This document shows, piece by piece, positions 26,679 to 56,827 of a DNA stretch of 64,000 bases. The stretch's first letter is position 1. Every line of letters starts with the position of its first letter. The notes under the pieces were generated by a model. The model had not been told where the DNA came from. It did no database searches and saw nothing but the letters and a program-made list of their open reading frames with translations. The DNA comes from Azolla caroliniana (Eukaryota; Plantae; Polypodiophyta), in NCBI GenBank assembly GCA_043228905.1, contig JBHGNT010000027.1, positions 310,001-374,000 of the forward strand. Direction: 5' to 3'. The position numbers and the translations under genes are program-made.

Positions 26679-26752
26679 TGCGGGGTGGAGTAAATGGCCA
26701 ACTCGTCAGGCTCATGACCTGAAGACTGCGGGTTCAAACCCTGCCCCCGCAC
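26679..26752 (+). tRNA. trnfM: tRNA-fMet(CAU), copy 1
   Basis: GCGGGGTGGAG...TCAGG-CTCATGA-CCTGA...TTCAAACCC, plant mitochondrial initiator type. Confidence 0.9.
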
Positions 26753-30143: not shown

Positions 30144-30554
30144 TGGAGTTCGAAAAACGTATAGATCGAAAGACGACGACAAAGCGAAGGCCTTCATTGC
30201 ATTGCTGCGACTTGCTTGCTGCAAGGACATAAGACTTTCTTTCTAGGCCCTTTTCCCTTCCCGCTACATCCTTCTTTGTACCTGTAGAGGCAGGGTCGAA
30301 TGGTGGCTCTGCAGTTTGGCTTGATTGCTCTTGAATTGGAGAGATACGAACAGAAAATTTTCATCGATAGCGTTCCATGAATTATCGTATATGAAACGAA
30401 TTGAACACAAATGATCCATCACTCGCATTCTACTAGGTGCTTGAGCGGGGCAAAGTCTTTGCGCGCGCATAGAAGGCCCCGCGCTTCGGCCGATTTGTAT
30501 TATAGGAATGATCTCTTTCTTCATAATACCCCTCCTTTCGGAAACGAAACTTAG

Positions 30555-30625: not shown

Positions 30626-31639
30626 ACTGACAAATAGGACAAAGGATGGCTACAGATCATGGCTATGGGAAAACCAAACCCATTTCTACCGAGGGACTGC
30701 GGTCAAGCGAAGGCTTACGAATTGGGACGAAGGTTTGGACTGAAGGGAGGAGTTACGTAGCTTAGACTGAAGAGAACAAGCACAGGAAGAAAGGAAGAGC
30801 ATGCCGTAAAAGCAGCATGGTTGAGGGTCGATCTTGTCTTCCCTTTAACTGGTTCAATTGGCGTGGGAGGGGGCGGACCCCGCCCCGACGTATAGGATAA
30901 AAAATGACTTAATTGAAGACAATTTTCCATAACCAAGTTGTTGTTACTTTTAGCCCTCTACATCCCCAGGAGCTGAGCCAACAGATGAATTCTCAGAACA
31001 AAATGATAATTCATTCTCGCTCGAGATCAGACTCATCAAACCGTAAGCGGTATGCTTTCGTGGTTGCCTTAATGGGGTTAATTCATTCTCCACAATATTG
31101 CATTGCGGACTTTCCTGTAGTCCCATTGGGATAGGGGAGCGCCTCGCGATAGTGCCTGCTACCCTATCCCAGTATCATATTTCCTGCTAGCTGAACTGAG
31201 GTCACTAATTGCTTGCGGCGTTGTTGACTTGATTTCGGTTTTGTAGGACGTTAGAAGCGCCTGAGAGCATAGGTTTGATCTAACGTCATCTTCTAGGACA
31301 GAGGAGATTTCTGTTAGCTGCGAAAGTTAAAGTTGTTGCAGAAAACTCCCTCCAACTTACCGCCCAGCCGCTCTCTGCGGGTGTGACTGTTTATAACCTC
31401 CCAGTGTATCAAGCCCAAATTCCAGGGCTGTGCTGGGCTCTTTTTCTCATCTGGAGCCGCTTTCGCCATCGCAAAGAATGGCAAAGGGACGCATAGTAAG
31501 GTGACGAATAATACTGGTTCTTGCTTGATTTCTGGTGCCGCTCTGAAGAGGTGAGAGACAGCAACTAGCATCCTTTCTAGTGGGTATTCTTTTTTCTTTT
31601 TTGAATTTTCCTTATTTTACTGGCTTTTCTGCTGGGTTC

Positions 31640-32317
31640 TCAAGCCTTTTTCGAATGAATGACTATTTTCGTGACCAATTAGCAAAATGGATTTGTGAAC
31701 CACACGGAATCATTATTTACCAGAATGAGATAAATAACTAACCTATGTAATCCCTCTAGGAGAGTAGAATCCACCAGGAATGCAATAAATATTCATGATC
31801 AATTAGCTTCAAATATAGCTATGAAATCTTTACGTGCATTCGGTATAACTAAACTATCTGAAATTTAGCATGTTATCAGTCCTTCGAAATATCTTTACAT
31901 CTTTAAAAAACGTAGACTAGAATGCCGCCACGTGGATGAATACTTAAAGCGTTCTTCATGTTTCATATGTTCCCAATTGATTAAGAAACCACCAATCCAT
32001 TTGGAATTGATATGACTTTAATTGGTCCTTCTCGCCATTTTTTTCATTGTGTCATCGTACAAAAGATCAATATTCACCAACAATAAATGGCCCTCCTTAC
32101 GAATGATAGATCCAATCGCATTACAAGCAATCTTCAAGAATAAAAGTGTTTTTTCCAAATCAATAATAGCCCTTCCGCGTCTAAATCCGTATAAATATCT
32201 TTAATAATATGGAGTTGGGGGTCCCTAATAGCCCGAATGTGCGCTTGTATTCGGTAATCTTTAAAAAATGACTTTCTTTTCCTTTTTGGAATAATACTCT
32301 TTCTTTCCTTTTTCCAT
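31640..32317 (-). CDS. rps2: ribosomal protein S2 (possible chimeric upstream start at 32431; 3' end approximate)
   Basis: AH.G.(Q)...YLYGFRRGRAIIDLEKTL...KWIGGFL.NW.HMK...EAN....I.FLVDS...NNDS. Confidence 0.88.
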
Positions 32318-32467
32318 TTCATACGGTAGAGCGGCGCATAATATGCTTTCTTTCTTCGATGTTCAAAATCTATGTATCCGTTTGAAAACTGATAGAACAG
32401 TAGCAAATTATTCAAGTGGACTGCAAGCCATGATAAAGTTCAGTTCAGGCAGGGTTTCATAAAAATC

Positions 32468-33453
32468 TGAGATTGGTTCTTTATAATCATGGCTGTTTAA
32501 AAAGAAGTGAAAAGGGGCAAGTAATCCCATATACCAATATAGCGAAAAGTGACCGAAGCATGATGCAGGTTCGGTTGAAAGGAAGAACCCGCTAGCCCGC
32601 CCTGAACAAGGGCAAAGCATTCCGTAGGTATATAATCTAATGTGCACTTTCCGCATCCTACAGGACTTGAACCTGTGACCTTCAACTTAGAAGGTTGTTG
32701 CTCTATCCGACTGAGCTAAGGATGCTGTGCATTACAAACACTTCTAGGCTTTTCAGTTAAGTCAGGTAAAACTTGCTTGCCTTTTCGCCGAAAAAGCAAT
32801 AGAAAAAAGTTATGAATACAAGAAAGAAGAAACCGCAACCGCAGCCCTGGATGATTCTTCCTGAAGTAAGTTCTAAAGAATGCCCTAACCAGATTGATTT
32901 ATCCATTTCACGTAATTCGGTCGGTTACGTGTTTTTCATAGCACCTTTCATGTCGTGCCACATAAAGATGGATTACCTAAAATCAGTTGAATTCCTAAAT
33001 CATGAAAACAACTTTCACACGACGGCATCAAACGGGGCAAATCATCCATCTAGGAAGAACAGGATGTGGTTCCCAAAGAATGCTTTGACACCAGTGTTTC
33101 CTTCCTGTACTCCAGTGTTTTCGGAGCATCCTAATGGTTACACAAAATGGTCAAAACCTTAAAGACTTTGGGATTATTAGAAACGAATACTTCCCACACG
33201 TGTTCTCTAGGAGAGATTAGTCTCCCGCGAGTGCCTAAAGAATAGACAATCGACACTTTCTTTTTCAACGAAGGGAGTCCTTCACATTCCCATAGCCCTT
33301 TCTCTCTAGCTTTCTCTTGCTATACCGTCGCCGTTGCTGTTCTCAACCCTTTCATAATGTTACGCGGGCAGGAGAGCACTGAGGTAAAGTAACGGACGAG
33401 GGGGCACTATGATGGGTGGAAGGGGCGGGCCGGTGATTTTCAAGAGCGGATAC
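32468..33453. repeat. 986-bp inverted repeat, partner at 55806-56791
   Basis: Contains trnR(ucu) and an identical 116-aa ORF on opposite strands. Confidence 0.95.
32652..32725 (-). tRNA. trnR: tRNA-Arg(UCU), copy 1
   Basis: GCATCCTTAGCTCAGTCGGATAGAGC...CAAC-CTTCTAA-GTTG...TTCAAGTCC. Confidence 0.93.
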
Positions 33454-35907
33454 GGAAGGAGAAAGGATGCGACTCCTCTCCTGCGTCGTCCATTCGAAAT
33501 GATCGTTTAGTCAAGGTGTAGGGAGAATTTCACTAAATCCCGGGCTAGGTGATGAGGAAATAAAAGTTCAATACTCCAACACCCCAAAAAGAAAGCATAC
33601 AACGTTTAAGACCCGTAAAATCTATCACTAGCTAAACAATCATTCGGTCATGTCACTCGTTCCATCAGTCTTTCACGATCCGATTCTGGTTCTATCTGCT
33701 TTAGGGGTGGCCTACAGCACAGGTCCTGCAGGGGTCGCCCCCCACGGTTTCATAGCTGCTTTCGAGACTCGATTCAAAGGCAAAGGGAAAGGCAAAGCCA
33801 CGGCAGGTTTGGTCCGCCGGAACGGCGATCCGACCGGCATGGCCTGCGGAAACTAAACCGACATTCTATCATCGAAATGTTTGTTCTGTGCCGGCACTTA
33901 ACCGCAGGCAGTTTCCGCCACGTTTACAGTAATGGGGAATCGACCGAAAGTCAAAGCCAGAACTGTACGGTGCAGGCAAACCAGCTATTCAGCAGTTCTC
34001 AACCCCATTCTTTTCGTTGTCGAAGGATCTGGAAAACGACCTGTCTCTCCTCCTATAACTTAGATAGAATTTATAGATTACTTTGCTGCTTGCTTTTTGG
34101 TAGAAATTGAATGACCAGAAAGGGACCCTCTTTACCTTCCACCTAAGCCGCCCGCGCAAGAAAGAAGAGCTCGAAGCCAATCCCACAGCGGGAACAGTGA
34201 AGCAGGTCTTTCCGTCCAAAAAGAATAATACGGCTATTCTCACAAACGAATTGTTCCCTTTTAGAGAAAAGAAGTTAGTAGAAGTCTACTCAGGGGAGGA
34301 TAAAAGAATATGAGACGAGCGGCGCTTCGCCCAGGAAGAATATGAGCTAAAAATGAGCTGCTTTATCAGATGCTTCACCAGGTTTTTTGCCTCGCAGGAC
34401 ATTTATAATCTAAAGGGATTCCCATTCACTAAACCCTAAAACCTTACTTGAAACAAAATCGTTATGGATACGAAGAACGAGCAGGAGAGGGACGTCTGAC
34501 CTCTTCGGGCAGGTTAACGCCTAGCCTACTAATTAGACCTAAACACTAAATAAAAAAGCACATGCAAAGGCTCAATAACTATCTATTCGTTAATTTTACC
34601 AACATCGTCAGTAGAAGAGGAAGTGCTGCAAGCACAGCAGACACCGCTGAAGCATTAGATCAACCGCACATCAATGAGCGTGTAACTCAGACTGAGGGTA
34701 CGGAAGATATTGAGCGGATTGAAGAACTCGACTCCCTGATGAAGGGAGCTTACGCTAAATACGAATGGCGCAGAGCTATACAATTAATGCGGCGTTTTAT
34801 AATCCAATAAGATTATTTCGGCCGAAGAATCCTTACCTATATCGCAGTATACCATAGAACACAACTCACCCTACGAGGATGCCGCAGAAAGCAGCAACGC
34901 GCCTATGATGCGGGCCGCCGCAGAAGACGACAATTTACCGCCCATCGATTCACCTACGAGGGCAGAGGCGGAAAGCTGAATTTCCACGTTCGCCGGCATA
35001 CTATTTTTAGTGTAAATGAGGCGGAAGTAGCAGGTGGGTGCTTCTAAAATAAAGCAAAGTAGAAGAAAGAGGAAGAACCAGATAGAAGTCAAAGGTCTAG
35101 CTCTAGTAGATACAAGACCCTACCGGGTGCTTCTAAAGTGAAAGAAATGGAAAGAGAAGAATTGGATCAGTAAGGTAGGATATTAATCGTAAAAGATAAC
35201 ATGAATAATTTCCAATATTAAAGTTTACCTTGTTTTTTGTGTTTTAGGCAAGCAAGAGCTCTACTTACTTTACTGATTTCTTTTGATGTACTGAGAGCTA
35301 ACGGAGCTCCTTGCATAAGGTTCAACTCCTCATCAGTGCATGTTAGCTTCGGCAACGAGCAGGGATGAGCACGGTCTTGGTTCGTAGTTTAGCTTCCCGG
35401 TTGGCTGGCTTGGCTGGCAAATCGTCTCTGTGGTTCATCGTTTCATGCCGCATCACAGCAAGCAGAAAAAACGGATTGATATACGCGGGCACAGCCAACA
35501 GCTGAACCTAATCATCGGGGTTTACTAATGGCTTGTAGTCTAGCTTCACTGTAGTCTGTTAGCTGCCGCTTTACGTTTGTCTCGCAGCTCCACCAAAGGT
35601 GCGCAGCATGGCTGCAGTCCGGCTGGCTGCTTTTCGTGTTCGTAATTCTGATACTTGGTGTAACAGATTCTTCCCGAATTTCACAATTCTTCACGCTCCG
35701 TCCGCAGTTCAGCTCTACACCGCATCTTCCTGGAAGTGGCTTCTGCTATATGCAGCTGTTTTTTTTGTAGAAACAGGTCATCCGCTGCTTCTGGCGGCTT
35801 CTGCTATACCCTCTGTTGGCCGTGTTCATATCTGCTCGTTTGTCCTTTTCTTTTTTTTTGCTCGTCTTTGGTTTCTAGGTCTGGCGCATTTTTGTTGCTG
35901 GCTGCAT

Positions 35908-35940
<33 letters not shown>

Positions 35941-36454
35941 CTGTTGGCAGCTTTCTGCCGGCCGGTTCTAGCTTTCTAGCTGGCTGCAACTTTCAAGCAA
36001 GGTCTGGTGCATCTCTTCTCTGCGGTTCCTCCGGGATGAACCGGCGCGCGCGCGCGGCGGAAGAAGCGGGCACGCACGCCTTTGTATCTCTGGGTCTGGC
36101 ACGTCTTCTCCATGTGTGATTGCTGCTTAGCTGCCGGCTAATGAGCTCACAGTCAATGCGCAGCCGCGTGCAGCGGTAGTAATAAGGACTTGAACCCCAG
36201 CGAATCAGCAAGAAGGGCAACAACTCTTCCTCGGGAAATGAAAGAAGCCTCAGCGCGGCACCACCACCTTCGGCCCGGGACCACCATCTTCGGCCTCGAC
36301 GGGACCACCATTATCTTCGGCCCCAGCGACGGTCTATCCGTAGCGGGCTTCTGATCAGTTCGCGCTAGAAATGAAATCCTGCCTGAGAAATTCAAGATTC
36401 TCTTCGCCGATTCTTGGGTTTCAGGATACGAAGCATAGCCTCGACAAAAAACCA

Positions 36455-36569
36455 TGCTAGGCTTTGATTTTGTCAATTCGAACTTGCGTACAATGTTGTA
36501 GTCCCTACAATGCTGCAATAGCGTTCTCCGCTCCTATTGCCATTTCCGTCTCTGTATTCTTAATATACC

Positions 36570-36572
<3 letters not shown>
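36455..36572 (+). pseudogene. psbD: plastid-derived psbD fragment
   Basis: QFELA...[23 protein letters not shown] matches D2 [34 protein letters not shown], with indels. Confidence 0.8.
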
Positions 36573-36606
<34 letters not shown>

Positions 36607-36859
36607 GCCAAAAAGCTATCGACTTGAAGGGGTCCCTGCCAATGCTAGGCCATGTAGTTAATCTGTGTTTGCGGTCCACTAACGCATGAACCGCCGGCTT
36701 CACCCGGCCGCATTTGGTCCCTGTGACGCTGTTAGCGCTAGGTAAGCTTCTAACCACCGGCGGAGGTCTGAATTATTCTAAATTTGTTCTATAACCCGAA
36801 ATTTCGTATATAGAAAGATCGTTGGCAATTGCCTTTGTTCCATGGCTTTCTCTCTCTGA

Positions 36860-36946
36860 GGAAGGGTGGCCGAGCGGTTTAAAGTGTAGCACTGGAAATG
36901 CTATGTAGACTCTTGTTTACCGAGGGTTCGAATCCCTCCCCTTCCT
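36860..36946 (+). tRNA. trnS: tRNA-Ser(GGA), plastid-type
   Basis: TAGCA-CTGGAAA-TGCTA followed by TGTAGACTCTTGTTTACCGAGGGTTCGAATCCC, as in plastid trnS-GGA. Confidence 0.9.
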
Positions 36947-37605
36947 TGCCATGAATACCCCATCCACGATTTGATCGAAAAAAAAACCTAAAGCCGCCGC
37001 CTTCAGCAGCAAGTCGACAATTAATTTGGTAAATGAATTCACGATTCTTCAATACTTTCACCCGCCCTATTGACTGGCTCGTTCAGGCATGATTCATCCG
37101 GAAACGGTGGCTTTGCGATTCGCACGAGTGATGCAAGGATTATCGTATAATAACAATCCCTGGGATGCCCGTGATGAGAACCTTGGCTTGCTCCTTTCTT
37201 TTGGTGTAGGAATGGCTTTAGAGCAAACCCCCCCAGCCGCCGTACTCGGGTATGCGATCTTCCAACGTTGTGAATGAGAAGTTTGCTTCATATGCACAAA
37301 ACTAGTTGAGAAGATTGGCCCATCAATCGAACCCACCACGGCCCCAGAACCTTTTCGCTTTGGCGCGGATGAAGCGGTTGCCAGCACGCATTCCAAAGCC
37401 GCCCATCAAGGAACCCTAACGAAAAGCATATAGAATCTTTGGGTAGGGATCCTTAATTGATGATAAGGCTGCCGGGATACGGCGGAATCTCATGACCGGC
37501 CTCGACGCGGTTTCGCTTAAGGTTTCAGCCCTCCGATTAAACAGCCATGATTATAAAGAATCAATGCTCACTACGATTTTTATGAAACCCTGCCTGAACT
37601 TTATC

Positions 37606-38241
37606 ATGGCTTGCAGTCCACTTAAATAATTTGCTACTGTTCTATCGGTTTTCAAACGGATACATAGATTTTGAACATCGAAGGAAGAAAGCATATTATG
37701 CGCCACTCCGGACTATCCATTTTAATTCCTGTGGTTTTCGAGGTATCATATCAATATACGTCTTGGAATTCCGATCGATACTCGCGGAGTTGATTATCCT
37801 TCTCAAAAATGAAGATTCGGAGTAGTCTATAACTCACCAAGCATTTGATATAACCCATGCATTCGTGTACGAATTGGTGTAGATGAAATCACTTCTGCAA
37901 GTTTGGTAATCAGTATATCCCTATCAGCCGGCCGGTGGGAGCGAGAAGTGCGGGATACGTCTGGTTTACATTCTCCTAATTATCCTGATTTACGCCGTAC
38001 ATTAACCGATTACGGTTTCGAGGGTCATTTATTATGAAAAGACTTCCTCTTAAGTGGATACGTGGAAGTACGTCACGATGATCTGGAGAAATGTGTGGTT
38101 CCTGAACTGATGGAGATGGTTCAAGAATTTTGCTATTCTGATTTGGCCAGTCCTTGGCGACTAATGCCGCCCAGATCCTTTTGTAATTTTGCCAGTCCTT
38201 GGCGACTAACGCCGCCCAGATCTTTTAGTACTAACCGCCGA
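37606..38241 (+). CDS. nad9: NADH dehydrogenase subunit 9 with an atp6-like N-terminus (stop by CGA edit at 38239 uncertain; genomic TAG at 38340)
   Basis: K(W)IHRF...GVDYPSQK(R)RF.VVYN...WEREV.D...DLRR.LTDYGFEGH.L(R)KDF.LSGYVEVR...ASPW. Confidence 0.9.
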
Positions 38242-38340
38242 GGCGGCTCGGAAGCCCTCCGAATCCGAAATCAGTTCATTGTAAACCGACGAGCGGTCGG
38301 GATAAAGAAAGAAAGAATAGGTGCATGCTGGCCCAAGTAG

Positions 38341-38371
<31 letters not shown>

Positions 38372-38409
38372 CTTCGGGATGGGGGCTTGATGAATCCCCC
38401 ATCCCAACC

Positions 38410-38497
38410 GGAGGTATGGCTGAGCGGCTTAAGGCATTGGTTTGCTAAATCAACATACAATCTTCTTGTATCATGGGTTCGAATCCCATTTCCTCCG
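38410..38497 (+). tRNA. trnS: tRNA-Ser(GCU), copy 2
   Basis: Identical to 26226-26313. Confidence 0.95.
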
Positions 38498-38862
38498 AGC
38501 GAGTGCGAAGCACGAGCGATGCGACAGTGACGTGATGGAAGAAACCCATACATTGCTTTTTGGGAATGCGGCAGTGGCCTGCCGGGAGAGACCTAGCCGG
38601 TAAGGGAGTGCTAGTTTTTGCTTCTTTTCTTTTCTTTTCTTGCGCGCTTGCTGCTTTTAAGGTAACATCAATGCTGCTTTAATAACCAGTAGTGCAAGTT
38701 CATTTGGACGGACAGCGGGAAATGCGATCAATAACACGTGGAGTTGGGTCTGCGGGCAAGCAAACATTCCCCCGCACAAGTAGATTGAATAGGAGTTGGC
38801 CGGCTTCTTTTTTTCTAAAATAAATTCCGATTCGCTAGAGAGAGATCAATTGCTTGCTTGCT

Positions 38863-47095: not shown

Positions 47096-47363
47096 ACGGC
47101 CGAAGAAGCGGTTTTCATCGGCATTCTACCTGCCAAAAAGAAAGCAGAGACTTCTGATTCCGCGATTTTGGGCGAAGCGGAAGATGTTGTCAATGAATAA
47201 AGGTACAGCTTGCTCGTTGACATCTCGGAAATATTCTGCCATTGTTGGGGCTAGGTTGAGCCAACTCTCATACGAGCTCTTCAACAGAGCTAGTCCGAAA
47301 AATTGATAAACGTTAAGAACAACCCTCTTTCATGCATGTTGGAACAAAACCCTTCAATTCATC

Positions 47364-48116
47364 ACGGCTTACAGTCTACCGGAATAACCTGCCATTATTC
47401 TATCGATTTCCATCCATATAGGAAATCCGTATCTTTTATTTATCAATTCCTCTCCATCTATGTCACCCACTACCAGTTTAATCCCGCTCCTAGTTCACTT
47501 GGTGACCTCGAATGGAGGACACTTAGTACTGAATGCTTGGTAATCCCTAGTGGAGATGACTTATGATTTCGTGCCCAATCTAGTGAACGAATAAATTAGT
47601 GGCGTTTCGAAATAATAGTCTTCTCTCCCGATCCTCGTTACTTTTACCTTTCCATTATTTCGTAATTTGTAAGGTATGGTACTTTATAGTTTTATGGTAA
47701 TAAGTCATTCTATTATTATTTTGGGTTCTCTATTCTCTCTTTCTCTTGGAACTATCGTAGTGGGGTCTTAAACACATGGGCCTCATCCTTTCAGTCTCTT
47801 ATTACTGCCGGGTGTACCTCCACCGTTAGCGCCTTTCCCAGTATTTTCGGAGTTAATCCTCTATCGTTTTCGTGCACTAAGCTTAGGAATATGTTTATTT
47901 GCTAATATGATGGCTGGTTATAGTTCAGTCAAGATTTCGAGTGGCTTTGCTCGGACCATGCTATCCATGAGGGGTATCTTGCTATTAGCACATCTCGCTC
48001 TTCTTTCGATCGTATTTGCATCAACTGGTTTAGAATCAGGTGTAGTTATTTTATAAGCTTATGTCCCTATAATCCCGATTCGTATTCATTTGAATGATGC
48101 AATAAACCTTCATTGA
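47364..48116 (+). CDS. atp6: ATP synthase subunit 6 (ACG start)
   Basis: (M)AYS..E(Q).AII...IHIGN...NAW(Q)SLVEM...ALSLGI.LFANMMAG...LNDAINLH*, 250 aa. Confidence 0.94.
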
Positions 48117-55805: not shown

Positions 55806-56791
55806 GTATCCGCTCTTGAAAATCACCGGCCCGCCCCTTCCACCCATCATAGTGCCCCCTCGTCCGTTACTTTACCTCAGTGCTCTCCTGCCCGCGTAAC
55901 ATTATGAAAGGGTTGAGAACAGCAACGGCGACGGTATAGCAAGAGAAAGCTAGAGAGAAAGGGCTATGGGAATGTGAAGGACTCCCTTCGTTGAAAAAGA
56001 AAGTGTCGATTGTCTATTCTTTAGGCACTCGCGGGAGACTAATCTCTCCTAGAGAACACGTGTGGGAAGTATTCGTTTCTAATAATCCCAAAGTCTTTAA
56101 GGTTTTGACCATTTTGTGTAACCATTAGGATGCTCCGAAAACACTGGAGTACAGGAAGGAAACACTGGTGTCAAAGCATTCTTTGGGAACCACATCCTGT
56201 TCTTCCTAGATGGATGATTTGCCCCGTTTGATGCCGTCGTGTGAAAGTTGTTTTCATGATTTAGGAATTCAACTGATTTTAGGTAATCCATCTTTATGTG
56301 GCACGACATGAAAGGTGCTATGAAAAACACGTAACCGACCGAATTACGTGAAATGGATAAATCAATCTGGTTAGGGCATTCTTTAGAACTTACTTCAGGA
56401 AGAATCATCCAGGGCTGCGGTTGCGGTTTCTTCTTTCTTGTATTCATAACTTTTTTCTATTGCTTTTTCGGCGAAAAGGCAAGCAAGTTTTACCTGACTT
56501 AACTGAAAAGCCTAGAAGTGTTTGTAATGCACAGCATCCTTAGCTCAGTCGGATAGAGCAACAACCTTCTAAGTTGAAGGTCACAGGTTCAAGTCCTGTA
56601 GGATGCGGAAAGTGCACATTAGATTATATACCTACGGAATGCTTTGCCCTTGTTCAGGGCGGGCTAGCGGGTTCTTCCTTTCAACCGAACCTGCATCATG
56701 CTTCGGTCACTTTTCGCTATATTGGTATATGGGATTACTTGCCCCTTTTCACTTCTTTTTAAACAGCCATGATTATAAAGAACCAATCTCA
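55806..56791. repeat. 986-bp inverted repeat, partner at 32468-33453
   Basis: Reverse-complement match. Confidence 0.95.
56534..56607 (+). tRNA. trnR: tRNA-Arg(UCU), copy 2
   Basis: Identical to 32652-32725. Confidence 0.93.
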
Positions 56792-56827
56792 CTACGATTT
56801 TTATGAAACGAAGAAAGACTTTTTCTT

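Follow-up and report, generated by a model that had tools for sequence, protein, structure and literature searches.

The stretch of DNA analysed here (hereafter "the window") comprises 64,000 nucleotides of the Azolla caroliniana assembly, and is mitochondrial DNA of plant type, in which there are numerous in-frame stops and "wrong" codons of the type that C-to-U and U-to-C editing repairs, as in ferns. Two of its genes are considered here, namely nad9, encoding an essential core subunit of complex I, and atp6, encoding subunit a of ATP synthase, with a focus on the 5′ end of nad9, which closely resembles that of atp6. Read from the ATG at 37606, nad9 gives MACSPLK*FATVLSVFKRIHRF*TSKEES..., and nad9 proper (37654..38160, + strand) runs from K17-W18 onward, with the tryptophan codon present as CGG and edited to TGG. 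Its longest stop-free piece carries the PF00329 domain (Complex1_30kDa) at 37849-38034 (E 5.1e-8, 33.9 bits, cut-off 22.5). The atp6 gene (47364..48116, + strand) includes many in-frame stops needing U-to-C editing and reads TAYSLPE*PAIILSIS... at its start. The atp6 body is matched by ATP synthase subunit a/6 chains in the PDB (E 1.4e-5), and its PF00119 domain at 47772-48053 scores 32.9 bits, slightly below the 33.9 cut-off for this unedited fragment, while the unedited N-terminal piece had no match in the PDB.

The first 16 codons of nad9 (37606..37653, + strand), ATG GCT TGC AGT CCA CTT AAA TAA TTT GCT ACT GTT CTA TCG GTT TTC, read MACSPLK*FATVLSVF in the genome and would give MACSPLKQFATVPLVP after editing, and are followed by AAA CGG ATA CAT AGA TTT. 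Those of atp6 (47364-47411) are ACG GCT TAC AGT CTA CCG GAA TAA CCT GCC ATT ATT CTA TCG ATT TCC, and both sets of codons lie exactly where the original prediction, made from the window alone, had quoted them. The two starts fall into an ungapped 62-nt block (nad9 37593-37654 vs atp6 47351-47412) with 45/62 identical bases and the start codons in register. Across the 48 coding bases, 35 are identical, and the 13 differences consist of 8 C/T, 4 A/G, and 1 transversion. When the nad9 5′ region was searched against both strands of the whole window (blastn), the atp6 start was the top match after the true duplicates (E 3.7e-7), with a local alignment score of 28 compared to a mean of 9.9 for 1000 shuffles (standard deviation 1.4, maximum 16). 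The likeness stops after codon 16 and extends upstream to about -17, and these boundaries are sharp, in frame, and the same in all ferns identified below. Likeness beyond -17 was not above shuffles, and we do not claim any longer atp6-derived leader or promoter. From codon 17 on, the gene is NAD9, without the membrane helices found in subunit a after the SPLEQF-type piece. Judged by its sequence, nad9 is thus not a member of the atp6 family; only the captured piece is.

Upstream of the nad9 start codon lies an atp6-type proximal leader (37585..37605, + strand; AAACCCT...TTTATC), which in the window includes a few extra bases (the GCCTGAAC region) relative to other ferns and to atp6. Within the window, the motif AAACCCT...TTYATC directly precedes a start only at nad9, at a second copy of this region linked to rps2, and at atp6, and is hence not a general start context. 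The corresponding donor-type segment of atp6 (47347..47412, + strand) includes 17 leader bases, an ACG start that needs C-to-U editing, and 16 codons which give MAYSPLEQFAIIPLIP after expected edits. Both genes share an in-frame TAA at codon 8 (37627..37629, + strand, in nad9; 47385-47387 in atp6), and nad9 can be read from the ATG at 37606 only if this codon becomes CAA. As the original prediction had noticed for ATG, CCA, and TTT, to which CTT can be added, several nad9 sites are already in their edited state (ATG, CCA, CTT, and TTT where atp6 has ACG, CTA, CCG, and CCT), with the TAA retained.

The same arrangement was identified in other ferns. With the N-terminal part of Psilotum NAD9 as query, a word search led to a 172-residue NAD9 (P0124) from Logan and ENA assemblies (contigs L001-L005), which starts with MACSPLEQFAIVPSIPKWIH, carries PF00329 over residues 34-152 (E 7.8e-28), and aligns with the NAD9 chains of solved plant complex I structures (8e73_S3, 7ar7_C, 7a23_F, and 6x89_S3; phmmer, E about 1e-60) over residues 16-171. 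In this fern, codon 8 is CAA in the DNA itself, so that SPLEQF is genomic. From -17 to +49, L001 is identical to the window atp6 at 53/66 bases, or 63/66 with C and T pooled, including 16/17 bases before the ATG, a cleaner match than that of the window nad9 (alignment score 40 vs a shuffle mean of 10.2, standard deviation 1.4). A pattern scan across the junction between atp6-type and nad9 sequence yielded 10 metagenome contigs, several of them identical to the window nad9 or to its rps2-linked copy. One of the contigs, L007, encodes a far more diverged nad9 which begins MTCSLLESFAIVLLVPKRIYKF... and reads MTCSLLESFAIVLLVPKR, while two further sequences from the same assembly represent a matching rps2 fusion (L009) and a partial nad9 5′ variant (L013, JAEIGA010838280.1, minus strand, ATG at 1267). 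The latter begins in the atp6-type manner (MTCSPLE*FAIVLLVSKR), lacks 1 nt after codon 33, and may represent a pseudogene copy, a different species, or a misassembly. Two other searches were less productive: a word search with the longest stop-free piece of nad9 (62 aa) retrieved only three unrelated fragments, because exact words are rarely preserved in an unedited fern protein and full-length NAD9 fell outside of the length limits, and a search with an angiosperm fragment returned 120 NAD9s, used as outgroups, none of which was a fern with an atp6-type start.

Every fern nad9 5′ end in this collection matches atp6 47347-47412 (80% for L001-L005, 76% for L013, and 73% for L007; E 1e-10 for the fern of L001-L005), and an alignment of nad9 5′ ends from three ferns with the window atp6, the type of check proposed in the original prediction, thus came out in its favour. 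With C/T changes excluded, the pairwise divergence of the atp6-type module among the three ferns amounts to 4.8%, 12.5%, and 12.2%, and that of the remaining nad9 sequence to 3.5%, 15.0%, and 14.1%. Module divergence thus tracks that of the remainder of the gene, which indicates that the piece has evolved as a part of nad9 since before these ferns split, and its apparent age fits one old capture.

Within the window, the nad9 5′ region is itself duplicated. The second copy (32329..32500, minus strand, ATG at 32431) contains the leader, the atp6-type module, and nad9 codons 17-34 in an in-frame fusion to rps2, and 37537-37708 corresponds to 32500-32329 at 91.5% identity (blastn), with an inverted repeat of 97% over 115 nt linking the two. 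The interval 37541-37710 originally proposed for the capture does contain it, but is in effect the stretch duplicated before rps2 (37537-37708), the true limits being about -17 to codon 16. The rps2 fusion region as a whole spans 30895-32500 (minus strand), and the same fusion is found in the diverged fern contig L009. At 32437-32441, the window and contig L014 share a 5-nt duplication (CTGAA) that L010, L012, L015, and the contigs of sequencing runs X15 and X17 lack, which makes it polymorphic. Further upstream, a 52-nt leader module (37537..37588, + strand; AAACAGCCATGATTATAAAGAA...TTTTTATGAAAC) is common to nad9 and the rps2-linked copy (32449-32500, minus strand), and recurs ahead of nad4L (56759-56809; 96% over 52 nt, blastn) as well as upstream of nad9 in the fern of L001 (2568-2616). 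This leader is not atp6-like, and may be a shared promoter or 5′-processing signal. Since it lies upstream of the atp6-type piece, the nad9 5′ region is a mosaic of at least two modules.

The direction of the transfer is indicated by the distribution of the two types of start. Outside of these ferns, NAD9 begins with an ordinary N-terminus, MDxQ(L/F)...LPKW, found in Psilotum (P0077, MDNQLFLKSPRATLPLWIHKF), hornworts (P0039 and P0063), moss (P0040), algae, and seed plants, and SPLEQF is absent from NAD9 in all of these groups. Fern NAD9 lacks this N-terminus, with just the PKW end kept, and aligns to solved plant NAD9 chains from residue 16 only (phmmer). SPLEQF, on the other hand, belongs to the N-terminal helix hN of ATP synthase subunit a, which is ancestral across eukaryotes and includes a near-invariant phenylalanine (bioRxiv 10.1101/2023.02.25.530031 / PMC10306403). 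An ordinary NAD9 start in the outgroups and an ancestral SPLEQF in ATP6 identify atp6 as the donor and nad9 as the recipient. The original prediction is upheld on each of these points, i.e. homology of the two starts, ATP6 as the source of SPLEQF, a different native nad9 start, and a capture of about 16 codons plus an initiation region, the last amounting to about 17 leader bases. A search for a remnant of the ordinary nad9 start in the window (tblastn with Psilotum and hornwort N-termini) returned nothing convincing; the best match (30273-30326, minus strand, E 0.09) is not preceded by Met-Asp and lacks WIH, and was judged to be due to chance.

A published set of editing sites from the fern Haplopteris suggests that the mosaic may be more widespread. 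The atp6 edits atp6eU2TM and atp6eU17PL (PMC10027690 supplement) imply that the gene begins with ACG and is numbered as in the window atp6. At the nad9 5′ end, only nad9eC38IT and nad9eU52RW are listed (PMC10027690 supplement); both are nucleotide positions edited here too, and the latter yields the codon-18 tryptophan seen in the mosaic. Haplopteris therefore probably carries the nad9 mosaic as well, as far as site numbering can tell. We found no description of a nad9/atp6 mosaic in ferns in the literature searched, and the Haplopteris mitogenome paper does not mention one.

Transcription and editing were assessed from contigs and reads of four runs placed on 32250-38249, including a DNA-like run (X15), two RNA runs (X17 and X19), and a polyA run (X21). 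Transcripts reach the module from upstream, as indicated by an RNA contig over the nad9 leader (36833-37604) with a depth of 181, compared to 15-32 in a silent stretch at 34324-36213. Within the nad9 body (37894-38029), 15 C/T changes on the sense strand, 14 of them codon-changing, are among those listed from X17 and X19 contigs and X21 reads, and mostly restore conserved residues (ITP, FPSAGWWEREVWDMFG, and NHPDLRRIL). On the sense strand, every RNA/DNA difference listed in nad9 or the module is a C/T exchange, and none is found in X15. For the module, an X17 contig of depth 268.8 placed on the rps2-linked copy displays edits at 32410 (TAA>CAA), 32394 (CTA>CCA), 32391 (TCA>TTA), 32386 and 32385 (TTC>CCC), 32380 (CGG>TGG), and 32365 (TGA>CGA), with the T of the TAA at 32410 read as C throughout (268.8/268.8 depth). 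SPLE*F of the rps2-linked copy thus becomes SPLEQF in RNA, in an edited peptide reading MACSPLEQFATVPLVPKWIHRFR and MACSPLEQFATVPLVPKW, while the corresponding motif in nad9's own copy is SPLK*F. Module edits at codons 8, 13, 14, and 16 affect the very codons at which atp6 needs editing, and recreate the Q, P, L, and P of ATP6. Of the editing check suggested in the original prediction, conversion of the module TAA to CAA and editing of the nad9 body were both seen, the module having been read, however, on the rps2-linked copy. In the 25 nt preceding each of the four shared edit sites, nad9 and atp6 agree at 16-19 positions, or at 22-23 with C and T pooled, and it is plausible from this resemblance that the same trans factors edit the homologous sites in both genes.

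Taken together, we consider it likely, with a probability of about 0.82, that the nad9 5′ end was captured from atp6 in a fern ancestor and has been kept and used as the start of the gene. Under this scenario, a short non-homologous or microhomology-mediated recombination would have swapped the nad9 5′ end for its atp6 counterpart in the ancestor of a fern group, bringing in the initial 15-16 codons along with the start codon and roughly 17 proximal leader bases. The junction may lie at a proline codon common to both genes, i.e. the P of "..PLIP" in ATP6 and of "..LPKW" in NAD9, which would explain the survival of the conserved NAD9 motif (V/I)PKW. Since then, nad9 would have been translated from the atp6-type AUG, with the "SPLEQF" helix of ATP6 replacing MDxQLFLKSLIATL ahead of an otherwise normal NAD9. 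Editing sites would have come along with the piece, nad9 needing U-to-C editing at codons 8 (the TAA), 13, and 16 and C-to-U editing at codon 14, the same codons as in atp6, and, given near-identical recognition sequences upstream, both genes are probably served by common site-recognition factors. The whole nad9 5′ module, with nad9 codons 17-34, would later have been copied in front of rps2. The recombination mechanism, the sharing of editing factors, and the retention of the piece in mature NAD9 are the inferred elements of this scenario.

A first alternative is that the atp6-like piece is part of the nad9 transcript without being part of the working protein, either because it is removed after translation or because translation begins elsewhere, so that it acts only as a leader or initiation context. 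The first 16 residues do lie outside of the core fold, the NAD9 Pfam domain beginning at residue 34, and the editing data are unphased for nad9's own module copy. A leader-only role is however difficult to reconcile with several features: in the three ferns, no in-frame ATG or ACG other than the module ATG precedes the conserved KWIH, the frame is kept without indels across about 12-15% non-C/T divergence, the resulting length is nearly that of an ordinary NAD9 start (W18 vs W17), and the module edits eliminate a stop and recover P, L, and P, as is seen in translated sequence. These features favour translation of NAD9 from 37606, as judged from the reading frames, and we regard a role outside of the protein as unlikely. 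Even less probable is a scenario in which the atp6 and nad9 starts have been kept alike by repeated, lineage-wise gene conversion instead of descending from one old capture. Plant mitochondria do recombine across short repeats, the module was copied once more to rps2, the nad9 and rps2 copies look homogenised in relatives, and a codon-8 TAA and a codon-13 CTA are common to atp6 and nad9 in this genome. Yet the window nad9 module differs from atp6 at 13/48 positions (5 of them non-C/T), more than the nad9 modules of two ferns differ from each other (8/48), and recurrent conversion sits poorly with the identical boundaries and the parallel divergence of module and gene body. Finally, the ordinary N-terminus of NAD9 (..LFLKSLIATLPKW) and that of ATP6 (SPLEQFAIIPLIP) are loosely alike in hydrophobicity and share a proline, which could hint at chance or convergence, or at a reverse transfer from nad9 to atp6. 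We give this next to no weight, given the significance of the DNA match both in the window and in the other fern, its extension into 17 non-coding bases, and the phylogenetic distribution of SPLEQF.

Several points nevertheless weigh against a capture that is old and translated. The depth of the ancestry shared by the three ferns is gauged from sequence divergence, the window atp6 stood for the donor in all comparisons so that later gene conversion may have contributed, and the atp6 origin of the 17 leader bases would follow from their contiguity with the coding part. The RNA runs carry one species label (organism C) and the best DNA matches another (organism A), and the module edits are unphased with respect to nad9. 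Logan contigs end at 37604 and 37654, the two module copies being identical there in relatives. X17 has no contig placed at 37650-37849, probably because edited RNA falls below the 85% likeness limit, and the polyA raw reads in this interval are about 1-2 deep. As a result, no single RNA record spans leader, module, and nad9 body, the leader contig ending at 37604 and the edited module lying on the rps2 copy. N-terminal processing of NAD9 may also occur.

Beyond the capture itself, a more speculative and rather doubtful possibility is that the atp6-type piece (-17 to +48) represents a portable expression cassette, such that one set of nuclear RNA-binding factors, i.e. a translation activator or 5′-end stabiliser along with U-to-C and C-to-U editing factors, serves atp6, nad9, and rps2. 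If so, the cassette would couple ATP synthase, complex I, and mitoribosome output, and new reverse-editing sites could arise in parallel in the three genes, as a site already served in one copy would be neutral in the others.

Other features surround nad9 in the window. The gene has two options for its 3′ end, either CGA at 38158-38160, which editing could convert to UGA, or a genomic stop at 38338-38340. This region (38143-38340) includes a tandem duplication of about 45 nt of the ...ASPWRL(M/T)PPRS coding stretch, with the CGA directly after ASPW, and metagenome contig L008, from the same species, departs from nad9 at about 38100 and has a frameshifted tail. A tRNA-Ser(GGA) gene lies upstream (36859-36947), with three base differences from the window in all runs (36904, 36912, and 36913), and a (GCAC)n microsatellite at 38344-38372 separates nad9 from a tRNA-Ser(GCU) gene (38409-38498). 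A long direct repeat (26117 onward and 38301 onward, 12184-nt spacing, 100% over at least 300 nt) begins just behind nad9; its contexts recur at 26736/38920 and 29079/41263, and the repeat is probably several kb long. In the polyA run X21, 516 reads are stacked on just 34162-34203 (40 nt); they have a 4-nt deletion at 34186 and are loose at either end, which looks like a short piece common to some abundant RNA.

If the capture is as we propose, an essential complex I gene has kept the start and helix motif of another gene through the divergence of several ferns, which would imply that mosaics can become fixed in standard genes, and that editing sites, including reverse edits that remove stops, travel with a piece of DNA. 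The near-identical editing targets in atp6 and nad9, and in rps2, would be useful for finding the poorly known U-to-C factors. For annotation, pipelines expecting MDNQ will see fern nad9 as "N-terminally odd" or truncated.

Few genes are as conserved as the core respiratory genes of plant mitochondria, and chimeric open reading frames (ORFs) in these genomes are usually taken as young by-products, often tied to male sterility. Male-sterility genes built from pieces of atp6, atp8, atp9, or cox2 form the wider class of such ORFs. One recombination-made chimeric mitochondrial ORF is bobt of Silene vulgaris (PMC6280394). Like the fern nad9, ORFs of the male-sterility type are in-frame mosaics of standard mitochondrial genes with a borrowed 5′ region and start, arise in genomes that recombine across short repeats, and carry borrowed editing sites which are still edited. 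Unlike nad9, these ORFs are extra, young, and often harmful, and exist beside intact parent genes, whereas the mosaic is the only nad9 found in the window, encodes an essential complex I core subunit, occurs in at least three diverged ferns, and has borrowed the conserved N-terminus of mature ATP6. Working chimeric mitochondrial genes with swapped 5′ regions are found in the parasitic plant Lophophytum (bioRxiv 10.1101/2025.11.14.688545), where, as in nad9, the 5′ part has an origin other than that of the body and resident editing machinery processes foreign sites. There, however, the exchange involves the same gene of host and parasite, through homologous conversion, while in nad9 two unrelated genes of one genome were joined and the N-terminus changed.

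Compared to helix hN of ATP6 itself, the first 16 residues of edited NAD9 (MACSPLEQFATVPLVP in the RNA contig, with K for E in nad9's own copy) match MAYSPLEQFAIIPLIP at 12/16 positions, including the near-invariant phenylalanine. In ATP6, hN lines the path by which protons enter and leads into transmembrane helix h1, whereas in NAD9 a soluble matrix-arm subunit comes next, so that the piece cannot fill that role. In flowering plants, atp6 has variable N-terminal extensions of unrelated sequence, which are cleaved off. Both these extensions and the fern nad9 reflect mitochondrial 5′ ends as recombination hot spots that tolerate replacement, with the difference that flowering-plant atp6 is the recipient, while in the fern nad9 case atp6 is the donor and its conserved part has moved. 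Overall, the nad9 mosaic is a recombination-made chimeric mitochondrial gene, and an unusual one in that the recipient is essential, the borrowed piece is the mature ATP6 start, the chimera is fixed across diverged ferns, and reverse-editing sites moved with it.

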